From Tubulanus polymorphus (taxonomy: Eukaryota > Animalia > Nemertea), in assembly GCF_964204645.1 (NCBI RefSeq), contig NC_134032.1, forward strand, positions 11,024,275-11,088,274: a stretch of DNA of 64,000 nucleotides. The letters are read 5' to 3'. Of this stretch, positions 27,001-55,600 are shown piece after piece. Every line of letters starts with the position of its first letter. Positions within the stretch are counted from its first letter, which is position 1. The position numbers and the translations under genes are program-made. Under the pieces are notes generated by a model. The model saw only the letters and a list, made by a program, of their open reading frames with translations. It did not search any database and had not been told where the DNA came from.

Positions 27001-30000
27001 CAATCAGCAGGACTCGAGCCTTGAATACATTCTTGTCCGGCCGGACAAATCGAGCAAGTCGTCGCCGAACCGGTGCTGTAAAATCCATCCTGACACGACT
27101 GAAATTCGTCAAAAATAATAATATGAAAAATTTTCATCCGTATTTTGAAGACCGCTTTGAAGTAGGGTCCCAATATTCAACCCCAGTGGCCAGTTCATGG
27201 GTTAGATTTAAAACGAAGTTAAGACAATCTAACAACCTAAGATCTTAAGATTTAAGACCACTTTTAGACTAAAGTCTCGACTACGGAACCGGGCCGAGGG
27301 TTCTAGGCTCAGTTTGAATGTCTAAAGTTTCAAACGGGGAACAGATCGAGAATGATCATTGGAAACGAAACTTACCGAGCAATCCGTCTGCCCCAACAGA
27401 CTATACGTGCCAGGCGAGCAGGCGGCCGGCGTCGTCGATACGTCCGAGCACGATTTACCCGTCGGGCAACTCGCGCAAGACGTCTGCCCGGGTTGATCTT
27501 GATACGTGCCCGTGGCGCAGGTGACCGGCTGAAGAAGCGGGTTCGGGCAGGCGGAGCCCGTCGGACAATCTACGCAACTCGAACCGTTCGAGTACTGACC
27601 AGCCTGAAATAATTCATGTTGAATTCACGATTCTATATTTACTGCATATTCATTTGACATATCATTTGATTTTAGACTGAAGAAGGCGGTTTAGGAATCA
27701 ACCAAAATATTTCTAGTATTTTAGAAAGACCTTTTAGTCTTTGAACAATTGTAGGATTTTACATTTATCAATTCACGTCAAAGTATTTACTTCGATTCTA
27801 TCAAATAAAGGTCCAAGTTTTACACAAAGATATTCGAATCAAAACGTTTGAGAAAGCCAATCCAATGGATTCCTTAGATTCTGGATTTAACCGATGGTTT
27901 AAAACCGACAGTTCTACAACTACAGTGGGTTGAAATGAACACGATATTGGTGTCGAAGTTACTCTAGGTCTACTACAATGATACACCACCAAATTCAAAA
28001 TCCATATTCCAAATCGTTGGGTTAGATCTGAAAGTTGTTCTTTTGTTTTAGTAAAAGGTTGAATACTTACAGTACAAAGGGCAGGTTGATTGGCTCCTCC
28101 GCAGCTAGTTCCAGGAGGGCAGGCCGTGCAGATGGTTGCTCCGGTTTCTGAATACTGTAACCAATGAGAACATTTTTTTCAAGCAATGAAAAAACTGGGA
28201 TAAATTCTTCTTTTTGATACACATCAAATTTGGCCCTTCATGCCGTATACACTTTTATTAAGTAGGAACTGGTTGATAAAACCGGCCTCCCCCAAAGTTA
28301 TCGATATATACCTCTCCAGTTGCGCAAGCGACAGGCTCCGCGGTGCTATCCGGACATTTCGATCCAGCTGGGCACTGCGTACAGGTCACTGCGCCCGTGC
28401 CCGTAAAGTAATATCCCGGAGCGCACTGAAATACAAAACATTTTTAAATTAACAATACAATTCTTTGAGAAATAAATCCCATCTCGTAATACAACAGACC
28501 TCAGCAATACAACAAGTTTGGATGATTTAGGTGCATCTTAAAGTTAAGGTTAAGTGATTATATTTCGTCAAGTTGCAATGCATTTTCATTCATTAGTTCG
28601 TTAAAGCATAAGTGGCAATAGTTACGTTTATGCAAGCAGATTTGCCCAGCTCGGGCTGGTATTGGCCCGCACCGCACAGCTGGGGCGTCGATTTCGAATC
28701 GGAGCAGCTAGAACCCCGTGGACACTCGGTACACTTATCAGAAGCTGGGTCCGTATTATAAAACCCAGCTGGGCACTGAAAATAAGACATTTTACGGCAC
28801 ATGAGTTAGTTATATTACCCTGAGATGTTAAGTTGTGAGTTTTTGATTCACTCATGTTAGTCGAATTTAAATCACTCAAAAGTGACGGAAAATATTTACG
28901 TTACGTTAACTAATTTTCCTTTTAGACGTATCAGGGTCATTTCATGATATAATAAGGAATTTTCAAGGAGAAATTTCAAATTTCAAACATCACATTCATC
29001 CCAACTACTGTGGACTCCTCCTAAATTGGTGCTGTTTATCTCAGTAAACTAGTAATTCAGTGGTTTTGTAAGCAAATTTTTACCCTTTATACTGGTTCAG
29101 TTTCTAATTCAGTAACCACCTAATTGCGTAGAGAATTGATTTAGGGGTAGTCTTCTGTACAACTACATACATTTCTAATAGCCTATTTCTCAAAATTGAA
29201 GGAGTTCTGGGTATTTCGCTGCATTTTTCAGTTTAAAAGCAGTTTTTAAGGAATCAAGGAGTCGTGGGGACCCTGTGTATTTCTGGACAGGCAGATTTAT
29301 TTTGATATAGTACGCATATTTTCAAGCATTCCAAAGACAGAAATATTTTGCAGGAAAATGAAGACACAGATTACAGTTACCATAATAGATAAAATAGTTA
29401 GTTACATTTAAGCAGTTAGTTTTTCCGGTGCTGGGTTGGTATTCGCCGCGCGCGCACGGCACGGACGCGGCTTTAGGATCTGCGCAACGATACCCGACTG
29501 GGCACACCGTACACGAACCGGTGCCCGTACTGGTTTTGAAATACCCGGCAGGGCACTAGAATAAAATGAAAACTAAAATCATATTTTGCAAACACATTTT
29601 AAAGATAATTTCAGAGATCATGGAATCAATGATTAGATAGTTACGCTGATGCAAGCAGGCTGCCCAGTACTGGGTTGGTATTCACCAGGGCCGCACGGTT
29701 GGGGCGCTAACGTTGGATCCGCGCAACTCGAGCCCACCAGACACTCCGTACAGTTATCAGCTGCAGGATTAGTATTGTAAAACCCGGCTGCACACTGAAA
29801 TTAAGCCACACGATTAATCGTTAGATTGTTCAGCCTTGCGGTAGAAAATAATTTTGCCGAAGTTAGGAAGCAGTCATTGCAAGTTTAAATTCTAGCATTA
29901 AAGTTAGTTAATATTTAGACGTGACGTCATTTTAGACAGCTATATCGATGACAAATATAGCACGCATATTTACATGTTTTTTTATTAGTGAAAAGATGAA

Positions 30001-33000
30001 TAACAGATGAAATAGTTAGTTACGTTTAAGCAGTTAGTTTTTCCGGTGCTGGGCTGGTATTCGCCACGCGCGCACGGCACGGACGCGGCTTTAGGATCGG
30101 CGCAACGATGCCCGACCGGGCACGCCTTACACGAATCGGCGCCCGGACTAGTTTTGAAAAATCCGGCGGGACACTGGAAAAAAATGTTAACCATCACACA
30201 AGATACACAACATAGAAATTTTTATACAAAATCTGGATGCGAGACATCTCGAAGGCTATTATTCGTATGATTATCGTTGGAATGGATTATCGCGCTTATT
30301 CAGCGTTTCACTATTCACAAAACAACGATGGTAATAGGTATTAGGTCAAGGAAACATTCCAGACTCTTTTCATTGTAAGTGTAAGATTTCATATCATCTT
30401 TACAACACTGAGAGTGTTTAATCAATGGTTATTAGAAAGCAGTTGTTCACTGATTGTTGAGTAAAAGTTAGTTTAATTCAAGACATAATTTTAAGGCAGA
30501 CTTATTTTTCTGTCCACATTTCGCGGCAGAATCAAAATACAGACAGTTAGTTCAAATAGTTACGTTGAGACAGTTAGTTTTTCCGGTGCTGGGCTGGTGT
30601 TCACCGCGCGCGCACGGCACGGGCGAGGCTTTAGGATCGGAGCAACGATGCCCGACTGGGCACACCGTACACGAATCGGTGCCTGTACTGTTTTTGAAAT
30701 ACCCAACAGGACACTGGAAAAAAACATTAACCGTCACACAAAATACGCAACAAACATCTTTTTTGAGATCAAAGCAGTCTGCCCTGTATTGGGCTGGTAT
30801 TCACCAGGGCCACATATTTGGGGCATTGAAGTTGGATCAGCACAACTGGAACCCAGCGAACATTCATTACATTTAACGGCTTCAGGTTTATCGTTGTAAA
30901 AACCAGTCGCGCACTGAAATTAAGCCGAAAGTTTCACGGTTTCTTGGTTAGATACCGTTACATCGGAAAAAGTGAGACAGCTTTTTAATTCTTGGAAATA
31001 CACCGAGCAAAAATGCAGGGTTTGATAAGATATGACTTCAATAGGCAATTTAAACATTGTTTCTCAAAAACTGTTCCCTGCATTTATTACTCAGAAAATT
31101 GGTTAGATAGTTACATCAATGCAAGCGCTCTGACCAGTTTTGGACTGGTATTTGCCCGCCTCACAAGCTTGAGGACTCAACAGCGGGTTCGAACACTGGT
31201 AACCTTTCAGACATGGTGTACACGCACCAGTCCCGGAAATTGTCTTGTAATATCCATCGGGGCACTGTAAAATATCAATGGTGTTAAGAACTTTCCTAGG
31301 ATTGCCGAAAGAGCGGACAGACAAGTTAAAGGAGCGGAAGCCTAAAGCCTCAGATGACTTAAAGAATGTTAATCACGAATTATTGATTCAGTATCAATTC
31401 AATTTTCATAACCGATTAGGAAGGTTGGCATCCTAAAACGCTGAATCGAATACCGGATAAGAATTTATTGAATAATGCAGAATAGTTTATTCATCCCACA
31501 TAAATGTACTTCTCTCTTTGTATGGTTTTATCACGAACATATCTGAATATCAGATATGCACTAAAGGTACACACGATAGCGACGATTAAATTCGCTGACG
31601 AATTTATACGCCCGATACGAGAGGGCACACGTAGCGATCAAACCAAATTCGGTCAGCGACTGGCACTTAGTGCGAGAGAGTTAACAAATCACATGATATC
31701 AACAATACATCCTATTGGTTGATAAAAATGGATCACTCGGCGGAATTCAGCGCTTAAATGAACAGACAATCTAATAGGGGTTAGTCTCGGAAAACCAAGA
31801 TCCAAGCGACGAAAAGCCAAACAAACAAACAAAATTTATCCTTGCGTACTGCAAAGGCTTCTAGTCAACCACCTTGCTGGAGAAAACGGGTATGATTGTC
31901 TTTTATGTGAATACTGCGTACCCTAACAAGAGTACCCAGCCTCCAATAATACTAGCATGATTGTCTAACTACCTGCAACATCGGATTAACGACGAACGAT
32001 ATTTTTGACTAGTATATATGAACAAGCACGTATTCACGAAAGAGGTGATATCCCTCAACATATTAACAACATTTGTAACATCGCCTTCGTATTCGTACTT
32101 TAACAATTTCATCCGTTTTAATGCGATAAGATATCTATTGACCGCATCAGGTGCTGACGTCATGATGACAACAGCCACGACCGAGGATATCATCCGCAAC
32201 GCTTGATCGCTGGAATATTCTTTCGCGCTCGTGAGCTTCGTTTCGTGTTTGCGAGCAACGACTTTGTACAATATCGACAGAGATAGGGTTATCATGGCGA
32301 AAAGTGGAATAAGACTGCCGAATATGAAGGCATGATAGCGTCGTATATGACCGGTATTTGGAATATGATCGAAAATATACCCCGGCTCGCCGTATGGGCA
32401 TGTGCGCTCACTTTTCACGTAAACGATCTGGAAAAAACGAAACAAGTTCATGAGAAAAACTGACAAACTTAACAGACACGCCATCATCCATGTTCTACGG
32501 ATCGTAAACCACGTTAACGCGCTTAGCGGAAAAAATACATTGATCATCCTTACGAATAAAATATAAACCACAGACCATCTTCTATTCATCTGCAGGGTCG
32601 CGTTTGGGACCATTATGAATAAAAGCATGAACGGCATCGTTTCTCGCGATTCGACGTAAAAAGCACCATTTCCCGAGATAACGTAGGACGCTAAATATCG
32701 AATTCCCCCTTTCAACAGCTTCGCTATATCTGCGACGCAATCGATTCCTGTATAGTACCGTAGAGTGACGAGAGAAACGGAATTCGATTTCTTCGCCATT
32801 CGCGTGAAGACGATCGTCGATATAACTCCCGAGATCAGCGACACTACTTGTAAGGGCGCGTGTACGAACAGCGTCACCCAAAATCTCGGTCTCAGCTTCG
32901 CGCATGTGACGTTTCGAACCATTTAGTTCGGATGGCAGAGAAGTTTAGGAATAACCAGCGACGATGGCGAAAATAATGCTGATTATAGCTCTACGATCGA

Positions 33001-36000
33001 TACATCCGTGAGTTCATAACATCCACGTACGAGCAATTTTCTCTATTGCTCGAAGAGAACATATGGAAGTCACGTCTGAACATAATAGCAGTAATAATTG
33101 GCCCGGGGACCTAAAATAGTCGCACGTATGTCCCGCGGACACACGCGGTAATACATCTATCCGTTGATTTTTCTGTGAGTACCGGTAGTTCACTCTTCCT
33201 TTACCGTAGTGTGATGATGTCGGAAACTTTTACAGACAATTTGTGAGAAGGATGCATTTAGAGCTGTTGAGAGGATATTCAAATATCGTGGACACTGAAA
33301 TAACAGAAACACGAGACTGGATCCACTGTTAACATGGCTGCAGGCTGAGCAGATGTTTTCTGAATGTTTTCATTATTCCTGAAGATTCCTTACATTTTCT
33401 GACTTTTTCCTTATCATTGTGGGATTCTCTCTACATCGCGTCAACACGGATATAGTGTTCTATCAATCGTGAAGATGTTATATCTTTTTGCCAATGACTA
33501 TTTTAACAATAAATGCTTGAGATCTGCCTGCTGCGTTTGACCGTCTGTGGTTCAAACCAGTTGGCTGCTACCAAATCCAAGTGGGTGAGGATAAACAACA
33601 TGGCCCAGTTTGATAGGCTGGTACATGTATTATCTTAACCTGGGGGGCTAACTCAATTGAAAATGTTAGCCCCAAGGTTAAAGCTAACACTAGCCTATAA
33701 AACCGGGCCCAGGTGTTCCAGCTTCGAACCCTGATGGATAAAAAGAGCTTAGTTTAATCATTCCACATAGAGCGTACCTTCGGATCAAGTATAAAATATG
33801 GTTATATAGTCCCTCATTGCGGAAGCTTAAGATAAAATGAAAGAGTGATCTGGTTCATAATTCTGTATTTGTATTTAACATCGGCAATCCCGACATTCCG
33901 ACACTCCCGACATACCAGCAATCGGACATACCCGACATTTTGACATACCGGCAATCCGACATACCCAACAATTCGACATACAACGATCCCAGCACCTCTC
34001 TACAGCCGAACGCCCCACGATCCCGGCACTGCTGTACAGGGGAATATCAAGAACCGAACGCCCCACGATCCTAGGGGAATATTAGGAACCAAACATTGCA
34101 CGATCCCAGCACCACTGTACAGGAGAATATTAGGAATCAAACGCCTCACGATCCCAGCAACTCTGTACAGGGGAATATTAGGAACCAAACACCCCACGAT
34201 CCCAGCAACTCTATACAGGGGAATACTGGAACCAAACGCCCCACCATCCCGGTATCTCTACAGGGGATTGATAGGAACCGAACGCCCCGTGATCCCAGCA
34301 TCTCTCTACAGGGGATTATTAGAAACCGAACGCCCCAGCCTTACAAATATATATTCTCAAAACAACTGGACAGGAATGTCTGTATATAGGTTTGCAGCAT
34401 TGCCGGAATGCCAGTTTGTCGGGAGTGTCGGTATGTCGGATTGCCGGTATGTCGGGAGTGTCGGTATGTCGGGAGTGCCGGTATGTCGGATTGCCGATAT
34501 GTCGGGAGTGCCGGTATGTCGGGATTGTCGGGAATGTTAAGATTGCCAGATCTTTGGTCTGCATTATGCGTATTGATACGTAAGGCAAAAAGGCCGTTGG
34601 ACCACCATATTTTATACTTGAGCCGTACCTTCTATCTTTATGAGATTGGTACTACTAACTGTCCACTGATTACAATCGGCCATCAGAAAATCCATCTCTT
34701 ATTTGACTTATGTGAATAATGCGTACATTGTAAAGGTGCGGCAATCCTCCGATAAGGGTAAACCCTGATAGTCTAGGAGGTACAGCTATAAACGGGATCT
34801 GTAACAAACAAAGGCCATAAGATCCCGGGTGACATATTTGGGGCTTTGAAGTTGGATCAGTACAACTTAAACCCAGCGGACACTCGTTACATTTATCAGC
34901 TCTGGGTTTATCATACTAAAACAGAAATCATATGTCAGCAAAGGTAAGATGGTTAATTTTCTCAATACACTGAAAAAAATCTGATGTCACTTCAAAAGGC
35001 AATTTAAACATAAGTTCTCAAAGACAGGACTGCATTTACGTCTGAGAAAATTGGTTAGTTAGATCAATGCAAGCGCTCTGACCAGGTTTGGGTAGGTATT
35101 TGCCGGCCTCCCAAGCTAGCTAACTCAAAAGCGGGTTCGGACACGGCATGCGCCTATACCAGCAGTTCTCTCGTAATATCCATCGGGGCGCTGTAAAATA
35201 TTAATAGTACTATGAAATCTCCTAGGATTGCCAAAGGAGCGGACAGACAACTTAAAGGAGCAGAAAGCCTTAAGTCTCCAGCGGATGACTTAAAAAGAAC
35301 GTTAATTGAGAATCATTGCTTCAACATCGATGCAATTTTCATAACCGATCAGACGACTGGCACCCTAAAACCTTGAATACTACTGGAATACTGGATAAGG
35401 ATTTCCTGAATAAAGCGGTAAAGATTATTCATCTCACATGTATTTAGTGTACATTTTCTAAGGTTTGCACGATTATCACAAACATAACCGAATGTTCAGA
35501 TACGCACTAACGATAATGATCTTCAGTGCCAAGAAACCACGCCAGAGTATCTTCTGTCCATCCGTACTGCAACAGACTTCTAGGCAACCACCTCGCCAAC
35601 GGGATACTGAAGAATATGAGTATCCTTACAGATTGCCCAGCCCTAGCTGCGGTAATACTTACGCGGGGTTGTGCAACTAACTGCAGCATCGAATAAACGA
35701 TGAACGAAATTTCGGACTGGAAAATATGAACAAGCACATGTTTACAAAAGACGTTAGATCCCTTAATGTATTAGCGACCATTCCAACCTCCAATTCGTAA
35801 GCGTACTTCAATAATTTCATCCTTTTAAACGCAGTAAGACATCTACTGACTCCTTTGGGCAACGTCACTACGAAGACAACACCCACGACCATGAATATCA
35901 TCTTCACTGCTTGATTGCTGGAATGTTCTTTTGAACTCGCGAGTTTCGATTCATGGTTTCGAGCGACGACCTTGCATAAAATTAGCAGAGATAAGGTGGT

Positions 36001-39000
36001 TATGGTAACCAAAGGAATAATACTATCTAATACGAAGGCGTGAAGGCGTCGTATTTGACCAGTATTCGATATAAAACCAAAAAGATATCCCGGTTTGCCA
36101 TATGGGCATGTATATTTACTTTTCACATCTATCTGGAAAAACCGGAACGTGTTAACGAGAAAAATTGACAAACTCAACAGACACGCCATGATCCATGTTC
36201 TACGGATCGTAAGCCACGATAACGCGCTTAGCGGAAAAAATACATTGATCATCCTTACGAATAAAATATAAACCACAGTCCAATTTGAATTCATCTGGAG
36301 GATGGTATTAGGGGTAATCGTAAATGAAAGCACGTAGGGCATCATTTCTTGAGATATAACGTAAAAAGCTCCATTTCCCATGATAATGTAAGCCACTAAA
36401 TATCGAATTCCTCCCTTTGACAGCTTCGCTATCAGCGCAAGACAGTCGATTCCTGTATAGTACCGTAGAGTAACGAGAGAAACTGAATTCGATTTCTTCG
36501 CCATTCGAGTGAAGACGATCGTCGATAAAACTCCCGAGATCAGCGACACTACTTGTATGGGCGCGTGTACGAACAACGTCACCCAAAATCTGGCTTGTTT
36601 TGGGCAGGTAACGTTTCGAAGCATTTAGTCGTCGGATCTAGCAAAGCTCAATGATGTTGAAGCACACAGGACGCAACAGCGATAATGGCTTCACAATCGA
36701 TACACCTGTGCGTCTCTATAACGTCTAAGATCAATTACCTCAATTGCTCGAAGTTAAATCTGAGCATAATTGCGGTTAAGCATCCTGGGGACGTATAATA
36801 AGCGGTATGTCCTGCAGACATATGTAATAACGCATCTATTTCGGAGATTTTTCTACCACCATTCATATTCTATGGTGTACGATATCGTAGAAACTTTTTG
36901 CAGAGATCACGGTACCGGCAACGCTACTCTGGTAAAAGAGGATACAGCGATGATCCGGCAGGATAACTAGTATAGCACTGGGTTACCGCTATTCAATATC
37001 CTTCTACACTTCAATTAAATTCAAATTGATCTTTCTCATTAACAAATCAGTTTCCAGTTAAAACTATACCATACCCCGACTGAGTGAGAAAGTCGATCTT
37101 ATATCTATTTGATGACTTGTTTGATAACTTACGCATTTGGCAGCCTAAAAATCAAGTTCAAATTTCATTAAAAATGAATGGATTTTCACTACAAATAACC
37201 CAGTGTTTTGTTGTGCCATCTGGAGAGCGCCGGTATCCCATTTGTGAGAGGGATATCGAGGTCATTATAGGTATTCGAATATCATGAGTTTTCATTTTTC
37301 CTTCGACTATTTCTACAATAAATGTTTGAATCCTACTTTGATAGTGCTTATTTCCCTGATTAATCTTATTTGACTTGCGCGCTGCCGCTGGTAAACTATG
37401 AAAGTGCTGCCTACGGATCTTGCACACCAGAATACTAGCAATTTCTACGTGAATAACACATACACTGTTAAGAGGTGCCAACCAAATGGCTCATAGAATT
37501 GAGTTGAAACGTTAAGCTACCAGATAGTTTTTCTTTTTATTGTGGGTTTTTATCTACTATTGATATTGGACAGCCACTTGTGTATGGAAACCACGCCAGA
37601 GTATCTTCTGTCCATGCGTACTGCAACAGACTTCTAGTCAACCACTTCGCCAACCGGATACTGAAGAATATGAGTATCCTTACGGATTGTCCAGCCCGAG
37701 CTGCGGTAATGCTTACGCGGGGTTGTGCAACTAACTGCAGCATCGAATAAACGATGAACGAAATTTCGGACTGGAAAATATGAACAAGCACATGTTTACA
37801 AAAGACGTTAGATCCCTTAATGTATTAGAGACCATTCCAACCTCTACTTCGTAAGCGTACTTCAATAATTTCATCCTTTTAAACGCGATAAGACATCTAC
37901 TGACTCCTTTGGGTAACGTCACTACAAAGACAACACCCACGACCATGAATATCATCTTCACTGCTTGATTGCTGGAATGTTCCTTTGAACTCGATGTGTG
38001 CTTTCGAGTGATAACCTTGCATAAAATTAGCAGAGACAAGGTGGTTATGGTAAACAAAGGGATAATACTATCCAATGTGAAGGCGTGAAGGCGTCGTATT
38101 TGACCAGTATTCGGTATAAAACTTAAAAGATATCCCGGTTTGCCATATGGGCATGTATATTTACTTTTCACATCTATCTGGAAAAACCGAAACATGTTAA
38201 CGAGAAAAATTGACAAACTCAACAGACACGCCATGATCCATGTTCTACGGATCGTAAGCCACGATAACGCGCTTAGCGGAAAAAATACATTGATCATCCT
38301 TACGAATAAAATATAAACCACAGTCCAAATTGAATTCATCTCGAGGATTGTACTAGGGGTAATCGTAAATGAAAGCATGTGGGGCATCATTTCTTGAGAT
38401 ATAACGTAAAAAGCTCCATTTCCCATGATAATGTAAGCCACTAAATATCGAATTCCTCCCTTCGACAGCTTGGCTATCAGCGCAAGACAGTCGATTCCTG
38501 TATAGTACCGTAGAGTAACGATAGAAACGGAATTCGATTTCTTCGCCATTCCCGTGAAGACGATCGTCGATATAACTCCCGAGATCAGCGACACTACTTG
38601 TAAGGGCGCGTGTATGAACAGCGTGACCCAAAATCTGGCTTGTTTCGGGCAGGTAACGTTTCGAAGCATTTAGTCGTCGGATCTAGCAAAGCTCAATGAT
38701 GTTGAAGCGCACGGAACACAACAATGATAACGGCTTCACAATCGATACACCTGTGCGTCTCTATAAAGTCTCAGATCAATTACCTCAATTGCTCGAAGTT
38801 GAACCGGAGCATAATTGCGGTTCAGCATCCTGGGGACAATAATAAGCGGTATGTCCTGCGGACATATGTAATAACGCATCTTTTCCGGAGATTTTTCTAC
38901 CACCATTCATATTCTATGGTCTATGATATCGTAGAAACTTTTTGCAGAGATCACGGTACTGGCAACGCTACTCTGGTAAAAGAGGATACAGCGATGATCC

Positions 39001-42000
39001 GGCAGGATAACTAGTATAGCACTGGGTTACCGCTATTCAATATCCTTCTACACTTCAATTAAATTCAAATTGATCTTTCTCATTAACAAATCAGTTTCCA
39101 GTTAAAACTATACCATACCCCGCCTGAGTGAGAAAGTCGATCTTATATCTATTTGATGACTTGTTTGATAACTTACGCATTTGGCAGCCTAAAAATCAAG
39201 TTCAAATTTCATTAAAAATGAATGGATTTTCACTACAAATAACCCAGTGTTTTGTTGTGCCATCTGGAGAGCGCAGGTATCCCATTTGTGAGAGGGATAT
39301 CGAGGTCATCATAGGTATTCGAATATCATGAGTTTTCATTTTTCCGTCGACTATTTCTACAATAAATGTTAGAATCCTACTTTGATAGTGCTTATTTCCC
39401 TGATTAATCTTATTTCACTTGCGCGCTGCCGCTGATAAACTATGAAAGTGCTGCCTACGGATCTTGCACACCAGAATACTAGCAATTTCTACGTGAATAA
39501 CACGTACACTGTTAAGAGGTGCCAACCCTCCGACAAGAGTAAACCCCAGGTGAAACTTTAGCAGGTACAGCTGCAAAGAGATCCTGAACCTTGTCACTTG
39601 CTATGACAGCATTTTGTTAATCAAATCAAAAAACGGATTTGAATAACTCAGTACACTTATCAATGCTGTGTCCGTATTATAAAACCTGGCTGGGTCCTGA
39701 AAATAAGACATTTTACGGCACATGAGTTAGTTATATTACCCTGAGATATTAAGTTAAGATATTAAGTCACTCAAAAGTGACGGAAGTAATTTATGTTACA
39801 TTAACTGATTTTCCTTTTAGACGTTTCAGGGTCCCTACAGATCAGTCATTTCACGATATAAGGAATTTTCAAAGAGAAATTTCAAATTTCGAGCCAGTGT
39901 CCACATCAAAATCATCCCAACTACTGTGGACTCCACCTAAATTGGTGCTGTTTATCTCAGTAAACCAGTAATTCAGTGGTTTTGTAAGCAAATTTTTATC
40001 CTTTATACAGCCTAAACTCAGTAACCACCTAATTGCGTAGAGAAGAATTGATTTAGACATAGTCTGTACAACTACATACGTTTCTAATAGCCTATTTCTC
40101 AAAATTGAAGAAGTTCTGGGTATTTTGCTGATATTGAAGAAGTTTCAAACACCTTTAAAGGCATTTTTCAGTTTAAAAGCAGTTTTTAAGGAATCAAGGA
40201 GTCTAGGGACTCTCTGTATTTTTAGACAGGCAGATTTCTTTTGGAGCAGTACGCATATATTTTCAAGCCTTCCAAAGAAAGAAATATTTTGCAGGAAAAT
40301 TAAGATACAGTTATCGTAGATAAAATAGTTAGTTACATTTAAGCAGTTAGTTTTTCCGGTACTGGGTTGGTATTCGCCGCGCCCGCACGGCACGGACGCG
40401 GCTTTAGGATCGGCGCAACGATACCCGACTGGGCACACCCTACACAAACTCGTGCCCGTACTGGTTTTGAAATACCCGGCAGGGCACTAGAATAAAATGA
40501 AAACTAAAATCACATTTCGCAAACACATTCAAGATAATTTCAAAGAGATCATGGAGTCAATGATTAGATAGTTATGCTGATGCAAGTAGGTTGCCCAGTA
40601 CTGGGTTGGGGCGCTGACGTTGGATCCGCACAACTCGAGCCCACCGGACACGCCGTACATTTATCAGCTGCAGTATTAGTATTGTGTACGACTAGTATTG
40701 CTGCACACTGAAATTAAGCCACACGATTAATTGTTAATTTTTCGGCCTTTCGGTAGGAAATTATTTTGCAAAAGTTAGGAAGCAGTCGTTGTAAGTTAAA
40801 TTCTAGCATTAAAGTTAGTTGATATTTAGACATGACGTCATTTTAGACAGCTATATCAATGGCAAATGTAGCACGCATATTTTCATGTATTTTTTATAAG
40901 TGAAAAGATGAATACAGTGGAATAACAGATGATATAGTTAGTTACGTTGAGACAATTAATTTTTTCCGGTGCTGGGTTGGTATTCACCACGTGCGCACGG
41001 CACGGGGGCGGCTTTAGGATCGGTGCAACTATACCCGGCTGGGCAAGCCGTACACGAACCGGTGCCCGCACTGTTTTTGAAGGACCCATCAGGACACTGG
41101 AAAAAACATTAACCATAACGCAAAATATACAACAAACATTTTTTGAGACCAAAACTTTTTACGACTTCTTCTTTTGCATTAGACATTTCAAAGGCGAAAG
41201 ATTATTAGTGAAATTATGAGGTTAATAATCGGATATTTACACTGATGCAAGCAGTCTGCCCTGTATTGGGCTGGTATTCACCAGGGCCACATTTTTGGGG
41301 CTTAAAAGTTGGATCAGCACAACTTGAACCCAGCGGACACTCATTACATGTTTCGGCTCCAGGTTTATCGTTGTAAAAACCAGTCGTGCACTGAAATTAA
41401 GCCGAAAGTTTCACGGTTTCTTGGTTAGATATCGTTACATCGGAAAAAGTTAGACAGCTTTTTAATTCATGAAATTACACCGAGCAAAAATGCAGGGTTT
41501 GATAAGATATGACTTCAACAGGCAATTTAAACATCGTTTCTCAAAAACTGTACCCTGCATATATAACTCAGAAAATTGGTTAGATAGTTACATCGATGCA
41601 AGCGCTCTGACCAGGTTTTGGCTGGTATTTGCCGACCTCACAAGCTTGAGGACTCAACAGCAGGTTCGAACACCGGTGACCTTTCAGACACGGTGTACAC
41701 GCACCAGTCCCGGAAATTGTCTTGTAATATCCATCGGGGCACTGTAAAATATCAATGGTGCTAAGACCTTTCCTAGGATTGCCAAAAGAGCGGACAGACA
41801 AGTTAAAGGAACAGAAAGCCTTAAGTCTCAGGTGGATGACTTAAAAAAATGTTAATTGAGAATTATTGATTAAACATTGATTTAATGTTCATAACCGATT
41901 AGAAGGTTGGCACCTTAAAACATTGACTACTACTGGAATACTGGATAAGGATTTCCTGAATAGAGCGGTAAAGATTATTCATCCCACATGTATTAAGTGT

Positions 42001-45000
42001 AAATTTCTCTTTCTAAGGTTTGCGCGATTATCACAAACATAACCGAATGTTCTGATACGCGCTGACGATAATGGTCTTCAGTACCAAGAAACCACGCCAG
42101 AGTATAGTAGATAAAAACCCACAATAAAAAGAAAAACTATCTGGTAGCTTAACGTTTCAACTCAATTCTATGAGCCATTTTCAAAAACAGTTTCTGAAAA
42201 TGGCTCATAGAATTGAGTTGAAACGTTAAGCTACCAGATAGTTTTTCTTTTTATTGTGGGTTTTTATCTACTATTGATATTGGACAGCCACTTGTGTATG
42301 GAAACCACGCCAGAGTATCTTCTGTCCATGCGTACTGCAACAGGCTTCTAGTCAACCACCTCGCCAACCGGATACTGAAGAATATGAGTATCCTTACGGA
42401 TTGTCCAGCCCGAGCTGCGGTAATGCTTACGCGGGGTTGTGCAACTAACTGCAGCATCGAATAAACGATGAACGAAATTTCGGACTGGAAAATATGAACA
42501 AGCACATGTTTACAAAAGACGTTAGATCCCTTAATGTATTAGCGACCATTCCAACCTCTACTTCGTAAGCGTACTTCAATAATTTCATCCTTTTAAACGC
42601 GATAAGACATCTACTGACTCCTTTGGGTAACGTCACTACAAAGACAACACCCACGACCATGAATATCATCTTCACTGCTTGATTGCTGGAATGTTCCTTT
42701 GAACTCGATGTGTGCTTTCGAGTGATAACCTTGCATAAAATTAGCAGAGACAAGGTGGTTATGGTAAACAAAGGGATAATACTATCCAATACGAAGGCAT
42801 GAAGGCGTCGTATTTGACCAGTATTCGATATAAAACCAAAAAGATATCCCGGTTTGCCATATGGGCATGTATATTTACTTTTCACATCTATCTGGAAAAA
42901 CCGAAACGTGTTTACGAGACAAATTGACAAACTCAACAGACATGCCATCATCCACGTTCTACGGATCGTAAGCCACGATAACGCGCTTAGCGGAAAAAAT
43001 ACATTGATCATCCTTACGAATAAAATATAAACCACAGTCCAAATTGAATTCATCTCGAGGATTGTACTAGGGGTAATCGTAAATGAAAGCACATAGGGCA
43101 TCATTCCTAGAGATATAACGTAAAAAGCTCCATTTCCCATGATAATGTAAGCCACTAAATATCGAATTCCTCCCTTCGACAGCTTGGCTATCAGCGCAAG
43201 ACAGTCGATTCCTGTATAGTACTGTAGAGTAACGAGAGAAACTGAATTCGATTTCTTCGCCATTCGAGTGAAGACGATCGTCGATAAAACTCCCGAGATC
43301 AGCGACACTACTTGTATGGGCGCGTGTACGAACAACGTCACCCAAAATCTGGCTTGTTTTGGGCAGGTAACGTTTCGAAGCATTTAGTCGTCGGATCTAG
43401 CAAAGCTCAATGATGTTGAAGCACACAGGACGCAACAGCGATAATGGCTTCACAATCGATACACCTGTGCGTCTCTATAACGTCTAAGATCAATTACCTC
43501 AATTGCTCGAAGTTAAATCTGAGCATAATTGCGGTTAAGCGTCCTGGGGACGTATAATAAGCGGTATGTCCTGCAGACATATGTAATAACGCATCTATTT
43601 CGGAGATTTTTCTACCACCATTCATATTCTATGGTGTACGATATCGTAGAAACTTTTTGCAGAGATCACGGTACTGGCAACGTTACTCTGGCAACTCTGG
43701 CAAAAGAGGATTCGGCGATAATCTGGCAGGATCGCTAGTATAGCACTGGGTAACCGGGATTCAATATCCTTCTACGCTTCAATCAAATTCGAATTGATCT
43801 TTCTCATTAATAAATCAGTTCCAGTGAAAACTATACCATACCTCGACTGAGTGAGAAAATCGATCTCATATCTATTTGATATCTTGTTTGATGATTTTCG
43901 AATTCGGAAGCCTAAAAATCAAGTTCAAATTTCATCGAAAATGAATGGATTTTCACTACAAATCACTCTGTGTTTTGTTGTACTATCTGGCGAGCGCCGG
44001 TATCCCATTTGTGAGAGGGGATATGGAGGTCATTATAGGTATTCGAATATTATGAGTTTTCATTTTTCCTTTGACTATTTCTACAATAAATGTTTGAATC
44101 CTACTTTGATAGTGCTTATTTCCCTGATTAATCTTATTTGACTTGCGCGCCGCCACTGGTAAACTATGAAAGTACTGCCTACGGATCTTGCACACCAGAA
44201 TACTAGCAATTTCTATGTGAATAACACATACACTGTTAAGAGGTGCCAACCCTCCGACAAGAGTAGACCCCGGGTGAAACTTTAGCAGGTACAGCTGCAA
44301 AGAGATCCTGAACCTTGTCACTCGCTATGACAGCATTTTGTTAATCAAATCAAAAACGGATTTGAAATTCGTTATGAGTAACTCAGTACACTCATCAGAA
44401 GCTGTGTCCGTATTATAAAACCTGGCTTGGCACTGAAAATAAGACATTTTACGGCACATGAGTTAGTTATATTACCCTGAGATATTAAGTTAAGATATTA
44501 AGTCACTCAAAAGTGACGGAAGTAATTTATGTTACATTAACTAATTTTCCTTTTAGACGTTTCAGGGTCCCTACAGATCAGTCATTTCACGATATAAGGA
44601 ATTTTCAAGGAGAAATTTCAAATTTCGAGCCAGTGTCCACATCAAAATCATCCCAACTACTGTGGACTCCTCCTAAATTGGTGCTGTTTATCTCAGTAAA
44701 CCAGTAATTCAGTGGTTTTGTAAGCAAATTTTTATCCTTTATACAGCCTAAACTCAGTAACCACCTAATTGCGTAGAGAAGAATTGATTTAGACATAGTC
44801 TGTACAACTACATACGTTTCTAATAGCCTATTTCTCAAAATTGAAGAAGTTCTGGGTATTTTGCTGATATTGAAGAAGTTTCAAACACCTTTAAAGGCAT
44901 TTTCAGTTTAAAAGCAGTTTTTAAGGAATCAAGGAGTCTAGGGACTCTCTGTATTTTTAGACAGGCAGATTTCTTTTGGAGCAGTACGCATATATTTTCA

Positions 45001-48000
45001 AGCCTTCCAAAGAAAGAAATATTTTGCAGGAAAATTAAGATACAGTTATCGTAGATAAAATAGTTAGTTACATTTAAGCAGTTAGTTTTTCCGGTACTGG
45101 GTTGGTATTCGCCGCGCCCGCACGGCACGGACGCGGCTTTAGGATCGGCGCAACGATACCCGACTGGGCACACCGTACACGAACTCGTGCCCGTACTGGT
45201 TTTGAAATACCTGGCAGGGCACTAGAATAAAATGAAAACTAAAATCACATTTCGCAAACACATTCAAGATAATTTCAAAGAGATCATGGAGTCAATGATT
45301 AGATAGTTATGCTGATGCAAGTAGGTTGCCCAGTACTGGGTTGGGGCGCTGACGTTGGATCCGCACAACTCGAGCCCACCGGACACGCCGTACATTTATC
45401 AGCTGCAGTATTAGTATTGTGTACGACTAGTATTGCTGCACACTGAAATTAAGCCACACGATTAATTGTTAATTTTTCGGCCTTTCGGTAGGAAATTATT
45501 TTGCAAAAGTTAGGAAGCAGTCGTTGTAAGTTAAATTCTAGCATTAAAGTTAGTTGATATTTAGACATGACGTCATTTTAGACAGCTATATCAATGGCAA
45601 ATGTAGCACGCATATTTTCATGTATTTTTTATAAGTGAAAAGATGAATACAGTGGAATAACAGATGATATAGTTAGTTACGTTGAGACAATTAATTTTTT
45701 CCGGTGCTGGGTTGGTATTCACCACGTGCGCACGGCACGGGGGCGGCTTTAGGATCGGTGCAACTATACCCGGCTGGGCAAGCCGTACACGAACCGGTGC
45801 CCGCACTGTTTTTGAAGGACCCATCAGGACACTGGAAAAAACATTAACCATAACGCAAAATATACAACAAACATTTTTTTGAGACCAAAACTTTTTACGA
45901 CTTCTTTTGCATTAGACATTTCAAAGGCGAAAGATTATTAGTGAAATTATGAGGTTAATAATCGGATATTTACACTGATGCAAGCAGTCTGCCCTGTATT
46001 GGGCTGGTATTCACCAGGGCCACATTTTTGGGGCTTAAAAGTTGGATCAGCACAACTTGAACCCAGCGGACACTCATTACATGTTTCGGCTCCAGGTTTA
46101 TCGTTGTAAAAACCAGTCGTGCACTGAAATTAAGCCGAAAGTTTCACGGTTTCTTGGTTAGATATCGTTACATCGGAAAAAGTTAGACAGCTTTTTAATT
46201 CATGAAATTACACCGAGCAAAAATGCAGGGTTTGATAAGATATGACTTTAACAGGCAATTTAAACATCGTTTCTCAAAAACTGTACCCTGCATATATAAC
46301 TCAGAAAATTGGTTAGATAGTTACATCGATGCAAGCGCTCTGACCAGGTTTTGGCTGGTATTTGCCGACCTCACAAGCTTGAGGACTCAACAGCGGGTTC
46401 GAACACCGGTGACCTTTCAGACACGGTGTACACGCACCAGTCCCGGAAATTGTCTTGTAATATCCATCGGGGCACTGTAAAATATCAATGGTGCTAAGAA
46501 CTTTCCTAGGATTGACAAAAGAGCGGACAGACAACTTAAAGGAACAGAAAGCCTTAAGTCTCAGGTGGATGACTTAAAAGAATGTTAATTGAGAATTATT
46601 GATTAAACATTGATTCAATTTTCATAACCGATTAGAAGGTTGGCACCTTAAAACATTGACTACTACTGGAATACTGGATACGGATTTCCTGAATAGAGCA
46701 GTAAAGATTATTCATCCCACATGTATTAAGTGTACATTTCTCTTTCTAAGGTTTGCGCGATTATCACAAACATAACCGAATGTTCTGATACGCGCTGACG
46801 ATAATGGTCTTCAGTACCAAGAAACCACGCCAGAGTATAGTAGATAAAAACCCACAATAAAAAGAAAAACTATCTGGTAGCTTAACGTTTCAACTCAATT
46901 CTATGAGCCATTTTCAAAAACAGTTTCTGAAAATGGCTCATAGAATTGAGTTGAAACGTTAAGCTACCAGATAGTTTTTCTTTTTATTGTGGGTTTTTAT
47001 CTACTATTGATATTGGACAGCCACTTGTCTATGGAAACCACGGCAGAGTATCTTCTGTCCATGCGTACTGCAACAGGCTTCTAGTCAACCACCTCGCCAA
47101 CCGGATACTGAAGAATATGAGTATCCTTACGGATTGTCCAGCCCGAGCTGCGGTAATGCTTACGCGGGGTTGTGCAACTAACTGCAGCATCGAATAAACG
47201 ATGAACGAAATTTCGGACTGGAAAATATGAACAAGCACATGTTTACAAAAGACGTTAGATCCCTTAATGTATTAGCGACCATTCCAACCTCTACTTCATA
47301 AGCGTACTTCAATAATTTCATCCTTTTAAATGCGATAAGACATCTACTGACTCCTTTGGGTAACGTCACTACGAAGACAACACCCACGACCATGAATATC
47401 ATCTTCACTGCTTGATTGCTGGAATGTTCCTTTGAACTCGATGTGTGCTTTCGAGTGATAACCTTGCATAAAATTAGCAGAGACAAGGTGGTTATGGTAA
47501 ACAAAGGGATAATACTATCCAATACGAAGGCGTGAAGGCGTCGTATTTGACCAGTATTCGATATAAAACCAAAAAGATATCCCGGTTTGCCATATGGGCA
47601 TGTATATTTACTTTTCACATCTATCTGGAAAAACCGAAACGTGTTTACGAGACAAATTGACAAACTCAACAGACACGCCATCATCCATGTTCTACGGATC
47701 GTAAGCCACGATAACGCGCTTAGCGGAAATAATACATTGATCATCCTTATGAATAAAATATAAACCACAGTCCAAATTGAATTCATCTCGAGGATTGTAC
47801 TAGGGGTAATCGTAAATGAAAGCATGTGAGGCATCATTTCTTGAGATATAACGTAAAAAGCTCCATTTCCCACAATAATGTAAGCCACTAAATATCGAAT
47901 TCCTCCCTTCGACAGCTTGGCTATCAGCGCAAGACAGTCGATTCCTGTATAGTACCGTAGAGTAACGATAGAAACGGAATTCGATTTCTTCGCCATTCCC

Positions 48001-51000
48001 GTGAAAACGATCGTCGATATAACTCCCGAGATCAGCGACACTACTTGTAAGGGTGCGTGTACGAACAGCGTCACCCAAAATCTGGCTTGTTTTGGGCAGG
48101 TAACGTTTCGAAGCATTTAGTCATCGGATCTAGCAGACCTGTATCAATGATGTTGAAGCGCACAGGACGCAACAGTGATAATGGCTTCACAATCAATACA
48201 CCTATGAGTATATAACGTCTACGATCAATTACCTCAATTTGCTCGATGTTGAATCTGAGCAAAATTGCGGTTAAGCATCCTGGGGACAGTAATAAGCGGT
48301 ATGTCCTGCGGACATATGTAATAACGCATCTATTTCGGAGATTCGACCACCATTCATATTCTATGGTCTATGAGGTGCCAACCCTCCGACAAGAGTAGAC
48401 CCCAGGTGAAACTTTAGCAGGTACAGCTGCAAAGAGATCCTGAACCTTGTCACTCGCTGTGACAGCATTTTGTTAATCAAATCAAAAACGGATTTGAAAT
48501 TCGTTACGAGTAACCCCAGCAGCCCCAATTGATTTCATTCATGCTGCTAAAATCTTAAATCAGTGGAATGCTATCTCTTGGTTCAGAATTCAGCCTTCAA
48601 CAAGGAATTTTCAATAAGTAAGGAACAGCATTTGCGGTGAAAACTATTCAAAAAATAGATAGGCGCAATACAGAAAAATACAGTAAGGATATTTACAGAA
48701 ATACAGCTAGTTTGCTGGGTATTTGGTTGGTATTTGCCCTCGCCGCAGGCTTGCGGTGGTATAGTCGAGTTCGCGCAGCTACTACCCACTGGGCACGGCT
48801 TACATGATTGAGCTTTCGTTGCCGTATTGTAAGATCCGGACGGGCACTGTGAAAAATAATTAGTCATCAAGATTAGCAATGTTAGTATCCAAGGAATTTG
48901 CTAATTATAATTCAGCATGGTGTTAATTAGATTAGCTTTGAAACATTTAGATTACGACGTTTAAGAATGTTTCAACACAAGATTTTGTATTAACAGTAGA
49001 TCTTAGGTAGATGTAGTTAGTTACATTTAAGCACGACGTTTTTCCTTTCAATGGTTGGTATTCACGTGCACGCAGTGTGTTAAACGACAACGACAAAAAC
49101 ATTTTAGAGTGTTGGGTCCTCACTTGCGATTTTGTACAAAAATTAAGCACTTTTTATCCAAGTTCAACAGTTAAACTAGACTTATCAAAGTGAATTGATT
49201 TAAAGCAAGAATTTCTCCTATAATTTGAGTGCGATACGTCTACATACAGTTAGAACCCAAGCTTGTTATGCGTGTTGTGAACGTGACCAAAAATTACCAA
49301 TTTCAAACAGATAAGTTAAGCATCAATGCAATGTTTTGAAAGCCAGTTTCAAACAATGTGTTTAACACCAAAAACACCTAAGAAATCTCAGTGAAAGTAA
49401 CTTACAGCCAGGCACGTGGTTTGACCAGCACTTTTTTGATACTCCCCGGCACCGCACGGTGTACCTGCTGCCGTTTTACTGGGACATTTATGGCCTGAAA
49501 ATACAGCATTATGATTGATCTCGCACTTGAATCTCGCACTTTATTATCTATTATTCAACGTTTATTTTCTTTTTTTATTACTAAAATGTACCATACACAA
49601 TTCAAATAATCATCATTAAGACATAGAGTTACATGTAAGTACATGTGCTTCTATATTGTAAAGCGTAGTAAAGAAAAATGACAAAAAGGAGGTGTATTAA
49701 TTCCATAAAAAGCCTAATGCCCTGGCTGAATAGGAATTGGACATCTGAACAGGAAATCCTAACTTATTCAAGAAATTGAATGTCTATTCAGACAAAATTT
49801 TGGCCATTCCTAACTTCCATTGTCAGGCCGAATGTTAGAAAACTGCCTAAAAGTTGTGGTTACAATACACTTTTAATTTCTTAAACTTTTACTTGTCAAG
49901 CGTATGACCTACGATTATCATATTTCTGAAAATTTTGTGCATCAGCATCTGATAGAAGTTAGGACCAGGGGCTGATTTAAGGGATAAAAGCCACTCGCCG
50001 GGGGGCAAAGTGTATCTGAAATCTTGCTTCCCTTGTCATAAATCTGCTTGCCCTACAAGTACCGGTAGTAGGGCAGACCTGCAAGTAGTAGGGCAGTCCC
50101 ATTGGTGGCACAATCATCCGTTGGATCAATTGGGGGAAAAAAGCTTTGAGACGCATTAGTTCACTAGTCCGGCAGACAAGTGACAAACAATTGCCTTAAT
50201 GAATACTCGTCCCGGCCAATCAGACAAGTGCTTAGTTGCAGACCCTGAAGGATCAGGGAGAAAGATCCACACTTCTAAGTTGCTATTCAGTGTTTAAACA
50301 TTCTACAGTTAAATGAACGATCGAACTGCGGGTCCGGCGTAGTGCGTAAAGATTGAATTAAGATTAGAGGCGTTTCGATTACGCTAAATACCCAGCGATT
50401 ATAATATTCTGTATTTCTAACATTTTTCTTACCTGCGCTGCATAGCGTACAAAATGCACCACCTGGAGTCGCGCGGTACGAACCTACAATGACATACAAT
50501 GAATTATTGAGAACATTCTTAAAAATTCTTAATCAAAGAATATTCTAGTACGTAATTCATAGATATTACTCTGACAGATATAGTATCTGCAGAAAATTAA
50601 AAAATGACAATTTTGTGATAATTGCAATCGCTGACGGGTTACTGGTGAAGGGCCATTTGTATATAATTCTTATTGTCAACTGTTAAAAGAAACATGTGTT
50701 TTCGATAAGTAATTTATGGACATTTTCGTTTTCTGCCCTCTGCAAATGTGTTTCATTGTTGTTTCTTACATTAATTTTTAAAATATTGTTAGAAAAAAAA
50801 AATTATTTCGTTTTTTATTTCAGTATTCATTTTCATTTTCGTTTCAGCGAGTTCGCCAGGGAGCTGTTGTTTGAATAATTGAAACGTTCTTTTACGCGAA
50901 AAGGAAACATTAGGCGAATATCGATGAGCATTATTGAAAATAATTCTAGAACGCGATTTCGCAATAATTCCTCACGCGTAATCAATAAGCTTATTCAAAA

Positions 51001-52605: not shown

Positions 52606-55600
52606 CCTAGTTTTTTTTAATGTATTCATCCGCGCCTGAAAATGCTTTCTTGAGAACATCGGAAACTGTGTTTCTTTAGTTTTAGATTTAATAGATAAAT
52701 CTTATTTCTTAAGCTTTCATATTTGTATATTGGATTCTGATTATATCATCTATTCTCCACATCTGAGCCTGACTATTCTTCTACAGGATGATGATACTGT
52801 TGGTTATATTGTTATATAGGCCTAAGATATTTGAAAATTTGAAAGTGCTTGACTTCGCTTTGCTTGCGAGATAGGATCTTTCATTTTTTCATTACCTGAA
52901 GCGCAGGCTGTACACTGAATACTGTTAGCGGACGAGTACGAGCCCGCTGGGCACGCGGTTAACTTCGTTTTATCCGAGCACTCGTTTCCCGCCGTGCACG
53001 CCAAGCAATCCGTCTGCCCGAGATCCGGTTGATACGTTCCGTCCGGGCAAACGACGGCAGCCGTGAGGCCCGCGGTCGGACACTTACTACCTGCAACGAA
53101 ATAAACCTTCGGTCAACCAGGAACAAAATGTGAAAAACAAATTATTGATTAACGATTGATTCAAACGAATAGGATTAATCTTGTCCTCGAGCAAGCCGCG
53201 AAAAACATTGTCTACGTTTAGTAATCAGCAATCAAGGCCGCCATCACACGGAGACGATTTGGCACTGGTCAAACCAGACCCCGAGCCAAATTACCATATC
53301 GTATCATTCTTGCAATCCAAAGGGAGGCTTTTTACAGCCTATTACTTTTATAGCCTATTATTAGATGGCCATGCTTAAGCAAGAGGCTCGTTCACACATG
53401 AAACAGTCAATAAAATGCTTTCAAAACGAAACCGCAATACAGGAGGCTAGTCGATTTTGGTGCAGAGTTTTTGTTTATATCCTAATGTTCCATCATCGGT
53501 TTTCTTTATCCCCAGCATTTATAATAATAATAATGATGATAATAACTGTCATTTATATAGCGCAGGTATCCAAACCTAGAATTTGTTCAAATGCGCTCAA
53601 TTTGGTATCATTACCCCCAGCCTTTAAATCTATTCATGTCTCAGTCATCTCTCCCTGGGGAGAAGTAACATCTGAGCAGCTACTTGGCACTCAGGAGTCA
53701 TCTATCAGACGAGGTACCCATTTTACCCCTGGGTGGAGAGAGGCAATGAGGATAAGTGTCTTGCCCGAGGACACTACGGTAATGTACAGGGTTCGAACCC
53801 ACGACCTGGCTTCCCAGAGTCGAACGCTTTAACCACTCAAATATTTATAACAAGAGGGTTTATTTTATGTACCTTTAGGACACTGTACGCACGTAGAGTC
53901 AGACGCCGCTCTGAAAGAACCGGCCAAACATTTATCGCAGACCGTTTGAGCAGAGTTTGCGCTGTAACCCGGCGAGCATGCCTTTAAGAAGGAAAAAAAA
54001 ACATTTTTAAAACAGTCAATCTTAAATTTTGACAAATTACAGCCAAAAACTCACTAAAGGCGTCTTTGTTGGGACTATCATTGCATTGATGACTTATCCA
54101 AAAGATGATTTTTACTCTTAGTAAATTGATGAATTGGAAATACAAATTACGACTCAAAAATAGGGACGATCTAAGTGATAAGACGACTTATACGCTGATG
54201 ACTTAAGCAAGTTCGATTGAATTGTTCTTTTTAAACCAGTAGAAATAGAATTCCTCATTGAAATAGTTATCGAAAACAATACCTCAAACTTTCAGGCTTT
54301 TGATTTTCCCCTCAAAATATTGAAAGCATTTGTGAAGTAAATTTGTGAATAAAAATCTTTTTTGCTCGAAATTTCAAAATCAAGAAACACAGAAATATAT
54401 GTTACGCAATTATTGGCAATTTCTGAAAATAAATTTTTTTTCTCGTTTTCTTCACTATTTCAAGGAAAGTGAAGCGGATTTTAAGGATAACAAAATTTTC
54501 AAGACATTAAAAAGCGCAACTTCTTCTTAAAACTCTGTTAATCTCATTAAGATTGGAGAGATTTAGAATTGTTAAAATTTGAAAAATATTCTTCTTACCT
54601 GCGGGGCGTTGGTCGTAGTTGGACAAATATGACCGGACGGACAATTCGTACAAGTCGCCGCTCCCGATACTGAATACTGCTTCGCCGAGCACGGAGTTTG
54701 GGTACTACTCGTACAGCCGTAGCCGGCTGGGCACGGACTACACACAGAACCAGCTGCGATCGCCACCTGCCCGCTGGCGCAAGCGACGCACGCCGCGCTG
54801 GACGTCGCGCCCGAACTCGGATTACCGGTGCCCGCGTTACAAGCCTGCCTCGCCGAAGTACCTCCGACACAACTGCAATGAAAATCGAATGTTTTCATAA
54901 ATAGGAGACTAAAGTCTCTTTTTTGTGCTATAATTTTCACCAAAATTTAACATTAAAATAGTATTGTAATTGAAAATGAACTAGAAGCCATTATCATTTT
55001 AAGAATTTTTTGGATTTTTAAGAGAAAAAGTAGCTTTTAAAGGAGTAGTATCTACTCTCTCCTCGCAGTCAGGTCCAGTTGGTTTAAACACAATTAATAT
55101 TTACATAGGAATTTGGTTATTACGTAAGATGGGGAACACAAAGCACCTTAAAGGCTGTAATACAATTACAGAACTTTCACGTTAAAGTAATCAAATAATT
55201 ACCGAATTCACTGAATTATTCGAAAAGATCATCGCAAATTATTTGTAGAATTCAAAAATATCGAAAAAAAACCCTCACGATTCGTCGATAATCTAATCCA
55301 ATTTTGGTTAACTTGTGAAGCAAGTTATATTGAAGAAATGGCTCAGTAAAATGGTTGCGCAAATGAAATATTCAATGCTTGTCTTGTTTGTAATGAGTTT
55401 AATTTTTTGAAACCGACTAGTTTGTGGTAGCCTACTCACTAATATCCAGGGCCGCATTGAACACATGAACTACTCGCGGAATCCCAAAACTGACCCGCCG
55501 CACAGCTAGTAGCATTTACCTCATCTGTAAAGAAAAAAACATTGTTTTCAAATGAATAAAACATATAAATAAATGATTAATACGTTGATTTGTGATTCGT

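Follow-up and report, generated by a model that had tools for sequence, protein, structure and literature searches.

Divergent class A receptor genes in a tandem array apparently nested within a giant Ephrin_rec_like-repeat gene of the nemertean Tubulanus polymorphus

The locus described here raises the question of why receptor genes should have been multiplied together with exons of a larger gene in which they appear to lie. The window is the whole stretch of DNA that was analysed, 64,000 nucleotides of the genome of Tubulanus polymorphus (NCBI RefSeq assembly GCF_964204645.1, contig NC_134032.1, positions 11,024,275 to 11,088,274). Its minus strand carries five uninterrupted receptor open reading frames (ORFs), R1 to R5, which are interspersed with 150-nt cassette exons of a cysteine-rich host gene. 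A preliminary description suggested that selection on the number of receptor copies may be behind the duplications, with a longer host protein as a by-product, or alternatively that receptor and host may form a co-expressed sensory module. We think it probable that the nesting is incidental and was followed by recombination-driven duplication of blocks, and that the receptors are functional, autonomous genes which form no functional module with the host. On the sequence evidence the link between receptors and host is best explained as structural and incidental.

Identity and constraint of the receptor ORFs

R1 is found at 31969-32922 (317 aa), R2 at 35677-36624 (315 aa), R3 at 37731-38669, R4 at 42445-43383 and R5 at 47178-48116 (312 aa each). 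All five are intact, intronless and on the minus strand, as the preliminary description had said; their position within the host is a prediction. The spacings from start to start are 3705, 2045/2054, 4714 and 4733 nt. The only Pfam family that all five ORFs match directly is 7TM_GPCR_Srw (PF10324). Four copies score 22.6-27.7 bits (R5 27.4) against a gathering score of 22.2 bits, and R1 at 20.7 bits is just below this cut-off. In the Pfam scan R1-R5 gave no direct match to 7tm_1 (PF00001). Among the relatives collected by profile search 77 of 82 match 7tm_1 and 64 match Srw, and the relatives score better on 7tm_1. The Srw match is a family resemblance and not orthology.

An AlphaFold2 (AF2) model of R5 was built from an alignment of 82 sequences; eight paralogues alone gave an unusable model (predicted local distance difference test, pLDDT, 37.5). 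The model has a pLDDT of 90.4 and a predicted template modelling score of 0.88, and comprises seven transmembrane (TM) helices and helix 8 (residues 11-44, 48-88, 96-129, 140-163, 188-225, 231-265, 274-299 and 301-311). A Foldseek search with this model found the MCHR1, opioid and SSTR receptors with probability 1.0 and TM-scores of 0.66-0.73. In the ESM Atlas R5 has as its neighbours class A/Srw clusters from Mollusca, Rotifera and Nemertea (scores 0.95-0.97), and a mollusc 'Chemosensory receptor A' cluster is among the nearest.

The preliminary description had called these divergent class A receptors that lack canonical DRY and NPxxY motifs, in a lophotrochozoan setting, and this reading holds: the animal is a nemertean, the DRY position in TM3 reads VRM in R1-R6 (R6 is a sixth copy, introduced below), and the NPxxY position in TM7 reads NMCLF, or NTCLF in R1. 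Residues D2.50, R3.50, P5.50 and N7.49 are retained in R1-R6, and no variation is seen among the 82 relatives at the core positions D60, R124, P204 and N292. Degenerate DRY and NPxxY motifs are common among chemoreceptor-type class A families, so the loss of the canonical motifs does not exclude membership of class A. The five ORFs are thus predicted, from sequence and model, to encode divergent class A (Srw-like) orphan G protein-coupled receptors (GPCRs).

The 268 Mb genome was searched for further copies. R6, a sixth close paralogue, lies at C8:11672527, 600 kb from the array. About 1 kb upstream of R6 there is a 64-nt fragment (C8:11674473-11674536) that shares 84-86% identity with the coding sequence for the N-terminus of R1-R5 and is probably the remnant of a further receptor copy. 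A second, more distant set of paralogues forms a tandem array at C4:21366151-21463798, with at least 11 intronless GPCR genes 85-100% identical to XP_074649113.1, several of which carry single in-frame stops. A word-based search of 5.8 billion proteins with R5 returned no match. A HMMER profile search of 1.84 billion representatives returned a single strong match, P0121, which is 33% identical to R5 and is a paralogue from the C4 array of the same genome; below it are 922 weaker matches, from E 2e-23, at about 20% identity. R1-R6 are, as far as these comparisons indicate, a small divergent class A clade without a close relative in public protein sets.

Purifying selection acts on the receptors. 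In old receptor pairs the synonymous divergence (dS) is 0.53-0.63 and the ratio of nonsynonymous to synonymous divergence (dN/dS) 0.25-0.34. R1 is an old copy, with dS of about 0.53-0.58 and dN/dS of 0.31-0.34 against R2-R5. R2-R5 differ from one another by 30 synonymous and 33 nonsynonymous changes (pN/pS 0.33, binomial p=1.8e-5). The sole coding indel between receptor copies is 9 nt long and in frame, and 14 indel events are found in the noncoding flanks. The preliminary description had named neutral evolution, or the lack of a seven-transmembrane (7TM) or class A match, as results that would count against it; the receptors were found to be constrained and to resemble class A proteins.

These data also bear on whether the ORFs could be unexpressed relics that are intact by chance because they are young. 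In favour of such relics, R2-R5 differ by only 3-5%, and public protein sets in which the RefSeq proteins of Tubulanus polymorphus are included contain none of the receptors. The pN/pS of the young copies is however well below that of neutral drift at the significance given above, R1 and R6 have stayed intact at dS 0.5-0.6 with dN/dS of about 0.3, and the lone coding indel keeps the frame where the flanks have accumulated many. We regard relic status as scarcely credible.

The host gene and its cassette exons

Cysteine-rich repeat exons occur throughout the minus strand from 89 to at least 55576. The 3' part of the host gene (89-28425, minus strand) has about 45 exons with repeats of the Ephrin_rec_like type, among them the large exons 5478-7364, 8306-9280, 11756-13360 and 19259-20635. 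Host exons were searched singly and not as a joined spliced protein; on this basis PF07699 (Ephrin_rec_like) scores 25.6 bits in exon 19259-20635 and 23.0 bits in exon 8306-9280 (cut-off 23.1). The assignment to this family agrees with the presence of PF07699 in homologues of the host and of a CxxCxxGxxC...CxxGxY pattern in all exons. Exon 5478-7364 has counterparts of 60-67% identity in ENA and Logan assemblies and of 58% in a Lottia protein, and a relative in Nematostella is 39% identical. Relatives of the host gene are labelled 'MEGF6/11-like', 'notch-like' and 'K04H4.2-like' in databases, and no established name for the family seems to exist.

On the 5' side of the array there are host exons at 52896-53090 (phase 1-1), 50433-50483 (1-1) and 49406-49494 (1-0), and further exons of host type at 53868-54050, 54575-54946 and 55442-55576, all on the minus strand. 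The phase chain 1-1, 1-1, 1-0 leads in frame into the 0-0 cassettes, and same-strand host exons with a consistent reading-frame chain therefore flank the array on both sides. An orthologue of the host was identified by reciprocal best match on ENA ERZ26696836:ctg89595 and walked over 62 kb. This contig is collinear exon by exon with window positions 89-28443 and also holds counterparts of the 52.8-kb and 53.9-kb exons, and so orthologous exons from both sides of the array lie in one collinear gene in another species. We infer that the receptors are nested within one host gene whose transcripts would be spliced across the array. The giant Ephrin_rec_like-repeat gene itself appears from these comparisons to be deeply conserved, with a strikingly stable exon structure.

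Three long plus-strand ORFs (19370-20176, 9759-10340 and 18491-19003) lie opposite GC-rich host exons, in antisense orientation, and match no Pfam family; they are most likely by-products of the Cys/Gly/Pro-rich codon composition of the host. Just 5' of the last recognisable host exons a Myb/SANT-like ORF (59669-60364, plus strand; PF13837, E 1e-18) adjoins a DDE_Tnp_4 ORF (62463-63188, minus strand; PF13359, E 4e-40), which is the two-gene layout of a PIF/Harbinger DNA transposon.

The cassettes are exactly 150 nt long and of phase 0-0, encode a 50-aa module with six cysteines, and have polypyrimidine-AG acceptors and GTAA donors. Between 28.3 and 48.9 kb a DNA profile located 14 intact and 8 broken copies, 22 in all, and there is an additional fragment at about 48950-49010. 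The preliminary count of about 10 broken among 23 was close to this. All cassettes are on the minus strand. Six intact copies lie downstream of R1 (28626-28775, 29406-29555, 29645-29794, 30024-30173, 30564-30713 and 31115-31264) with one broken copy (30772-30913), and no receptor occurs between the cassettes of this block (28626-31264). Two broken remnants lie between R1 and R2 (34824-34916 and 35064-35189). Between R1 and these remnants there are minisatellites at 33908-34531, with periods of 17/33/50 and 48/93 nt, that read as 'CRECRYVG'-type pseudo-ORFs on both strands. The R4 unit has three intact cassettes (40337-40486, 41241-41390 and 41592-41741) and two broken ones, 40578-40685 with a 24-nt deletion and loss of the donor and 40947-41096 with a frameshift near its 3' end. 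In the R5 unit there are likewise three intact (45072-45221, 45974-46123 and 46325-46474) and two broken cassettes (45313-45420 and 45682-45831), the latter with lesions identical to those of the R4 unit. As these are the same two lesions copied, the number of independent cassette breaks is about five. An old, unique and intact cassette (48697-48846) lies 5' of the array and is not part of the recent duplication.

It had been proposed that every duplication unit combines a receptor with cassettes. This is true of the R1, R4 and R5 units, which alone contain intact cassettes; both cassettes of the R2 unit are broken, and the 2-kb unit with R3 lacks cassettes altogether. Intact cassettes have dN/dS of 0.1-0.4 and keep all six cysteines. 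Receptors and intact cassettes are both constrained coding sequence, or were so until recently.

The cassettes of the young units may nevertheless be dead pseudo-exons. The host would then splice the exons at 48.7-49.4 kb to the cassettes at 31.2-28.6 kb, the whole array would sit in one large intron, and the host protein would not have been lengthened. Two of the five cassettes in each young unit are broken, young type A cassettes differ at three sites that are all nonsynonymous, one of them replacing a conserved Gly, and skipping any cassette keeps the frame because all are of phase 0-0. Against this, three cassettes in each young unit retain perfect acceptors and donors, six cysteines and open frames, and the units are only about 3% diverged, so that decay would not yet be visible. 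We treat this reading as a tentative one, somewhat unlikely overall. It is compatible with incidental nesting and block duplication and differs from our preferred explanation only on host splicing.

Duplication history and probable autonomy of the receptors

The array is built from tandem units on the minus strand. Self-alignment identifies a 4.7-kb unit in 2.3 copies (37484-42197, 42198-46930 and 46931-48373) that are 96.5% identical overall, and a 2.05-kb partial unit with R2 (35533-37586) that is 95% identical to 37587-39527; the recent units together are 93-96.5% identical. An old unit at 28724-33174 corresponds to 39646-43613. Divergence is unevenly spread along these units. In the old unit the cassette blocks have a divergence (K) of about 0.12, against about 0.6 in the receptor flank and a dS of 0.53 in the receptor coding sequence. 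Divergence in the young units is 0-1% over the cassettes and 4-12% over the N-terminal half of the receptor and the sequence upstream of that half. The R4 and R5 proteins combine R2-like with R3-like segments; in R4 the N-terminal half is R2-like and the C-terminal half R3/R5-like. Such mosaic divergence is what unequal crossover and gene conversion would leave in sequence rich in repeats, and these are the probable recombination mechanism behind the array. Two dispersed repeats lie in the inter-receptor spacer upstream of R3, at 38957-39286 (about 330 nt) and 39824-40226 (about 400 nt). Dozens of copies of each, at 75-81% identity, occur on all large contigs of the genome, suggesting a short interspersed nuclear element (SINE) or a miniature inverted-repeat transposable element (MITE). 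The young units are at their most diverged where the repeat at 38957-39286 lies.

The two youngest 4.7-kb units could in principle be two haplotypes assembled in tandem. Their divergence (about 3.5%) is within the range of heterozygosity known from marine invertebrates. The window is however free of gaps, there are 2.3 unit copies and a separate 2-kb unit with distinct mosaic patterns, and the R3, R4 and R5 proteins all differ. An assembly artefact is accordingly most improbable.

The receptors appear to carry their own control region. A conserved element of about 250 nt, a candidate 5' untranslated region or promoter, lies immediately upstream of R5 (48117-48370, minus strand), and alignment places equivalent elements upstream of R1 (32923-33175), R2 (36625-36880), R3 (38670-38925) and R4 (43384-43640), also on the minus strand. 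In local alignment this element gives z = 27.6 for R1-R4, and 11.3 and 6.7 against R6, whose downstream flanks are not conserved, unlike its upstream element. AATAAA or ATTAAA is present 190 nt past the stop codon in R3-R5, and TATAWA occurs within 300 nt upstream of R5 only. A scan for promoters and terminators of bacterial type, whose models are bacterial where the organism is eukaryotic, stayed at chance level. The upstream element shared with R6 suggests that the receptors may be transcribed independently. A fusion of host ectodomain exons to the 7TM ORF, which would give a receptor with a giant cysteine-rich ectodomain, was also considered and is ruled out by an in-frame TAA immediately before the ATG in all five copies.

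The two proposals of the preliminary description can be weighed at this point. All five receptors are intact and constrained and 8 of 22 cassettes are broken, units with intact cassettes each add up to three in-frame 50-aa modules, and the common orientation would permit shared transcription; these points speak for duplication driven by receptor copies or for a module of receptor and host. The orthologue of the host argues otherwise. Across its 62 kb, in one species, no receptor-like ORF was found (best tblastn E 0.12, over a host exon), and the interval that spans 24 kb in Tubulanus polymorphus occupies about 13 kb. A second orthologous contig, ERZ25071447:ctg87040, starts about 23 kb upstream of the anchor exon, and the junction in the first orthologue is about 35 kb upstream. 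R6 lies outside the host with the same upstream element, and the 20 kb to either side of it are free of cassettes. R1 and R6 form a group in the tree (support 88/99), apart from R2-R5, from which it follows that receptors have moved independently of cassettes. Cassettes have in turn multiplied without receptors at 28.6-31.3 kb, and the R4 and R5 units owe their four breaks to two lesions and a single copying of them. The comparison of dN/dS that had been suggested places intact cassettes in the same range as receptors, with no contrast that would favour receptor-driven duplication. Neither copy-number selection nor a sensory module is a likely account of the locus.

A further idea is that host transcription or alternative splicing across the array decides which receptor promoter fires, or how many cassettes enter the host protein. 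The locus would then be a same-strand 'choice' array, with joint evolution of the number of receptors and the length of the host protein, but we give this very little credence.

We therefore return to incidental nesting and block duplication. One intronless Srw-like GPCR gene with its own short upstream control region would have entered the cassette region of the host in the Tubulanus lineage. Unequal crossover and gene conversion would then have copied blocks of this region repeatedly, since near-identical, symmetric 150-nt exons and their introns misalign easily. Blocks that happened to include the receptor would have given rise to the five-copy array, in which all copies share one orientation because they go back to a single insertion. 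The host mRNA may include the duplicated cassettes or may skip them.

Several points weigh against this explanation. That each receptor has an independent promoter and is expressed, and that the host transcript is spliced across the array, are predictions. Five of five receptors are intact where a third of the cassettes are broken, and selection for receptor copies would give the same pattern. The receptors are absent from public protein sets that include the RefSeq proteins of the species, which could mean that expression is low or nil. The orthologue comparison covers one species that is not a close relative; as its host identity is only 60-67%, the time of insertion is poorly bounded.

Comparison with known receptor families and nested genes

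The closest described analogues of R1-R6 are the candidate chemoreceptors AcCRa and AcCRb of Aplysia, which are mostly intronless rhodopsin-type GPCRs (Cummins et al. 2009, PMC2700072). Both groups are lophotrochozoan, mostly intronless, rhodopsin-type and about 320-360 aa long. They differ in that there is no detectable close sequence relationship between them and in that the R1-R6 clade has only six members. The nematode Srw chemoreceptors (PF10324, GPCR_A clan) are related through the Pfam match, but the scores of R1-R5 are at the threshold (20.7-27.7 against 22.2 bits) and the fold resembles that of peptide-type class A receptors. By analogy with these families, and from the tandem expansion, a chemosensory role may be suggested for the receptors.

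The nearest clade is the C4 array (21.36-21.46 Mb), represented by XP_074649113.1, 'somatostatin receptor type 2-like'. Its members are 33-34% identical to the receptors, are intronless and share the motif TCPY.KPGY in the second extracellular loop; they keep DRL where R1-R6 have VRM, and they are annotated in RefSeq. The present locus thus adds a six-member GPCR clade that is missing from public protein sets, where its nearest relatives are these 33%-identical paralogues, followed by sequences of about 20% identity.

As with nested genes of other animals, a single-exon gene would here lie inside an intron of a larger gene. In humans about 41% of nested genes have a single exon and about 37% lie on the strand of the host (PMC3192792), in line with the earlier statement that nested genes are more often antisense. 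The same-strand nesting described here counts as one case, because the five copies stem from one insertion. We found no description of a nested gene tandemly multiplied with host exons, in a literature search that was not exhaustive, and no genome paper on Tubulanus polymorphus that discusses the locus. The apparent coupling of receptor and host needs no functional explanation. The host protein would have gained up to 300 residues very recently if its mRNA includes the young cassettes. The array would be a clean and datable case of a nested gene and its host duplicated in one step: unlike the usual nested gene, the receptor has been multiplied in tandem with host exons, and each new copy would create a new host intron, in which it lies, and up to three new in-frame host exons.

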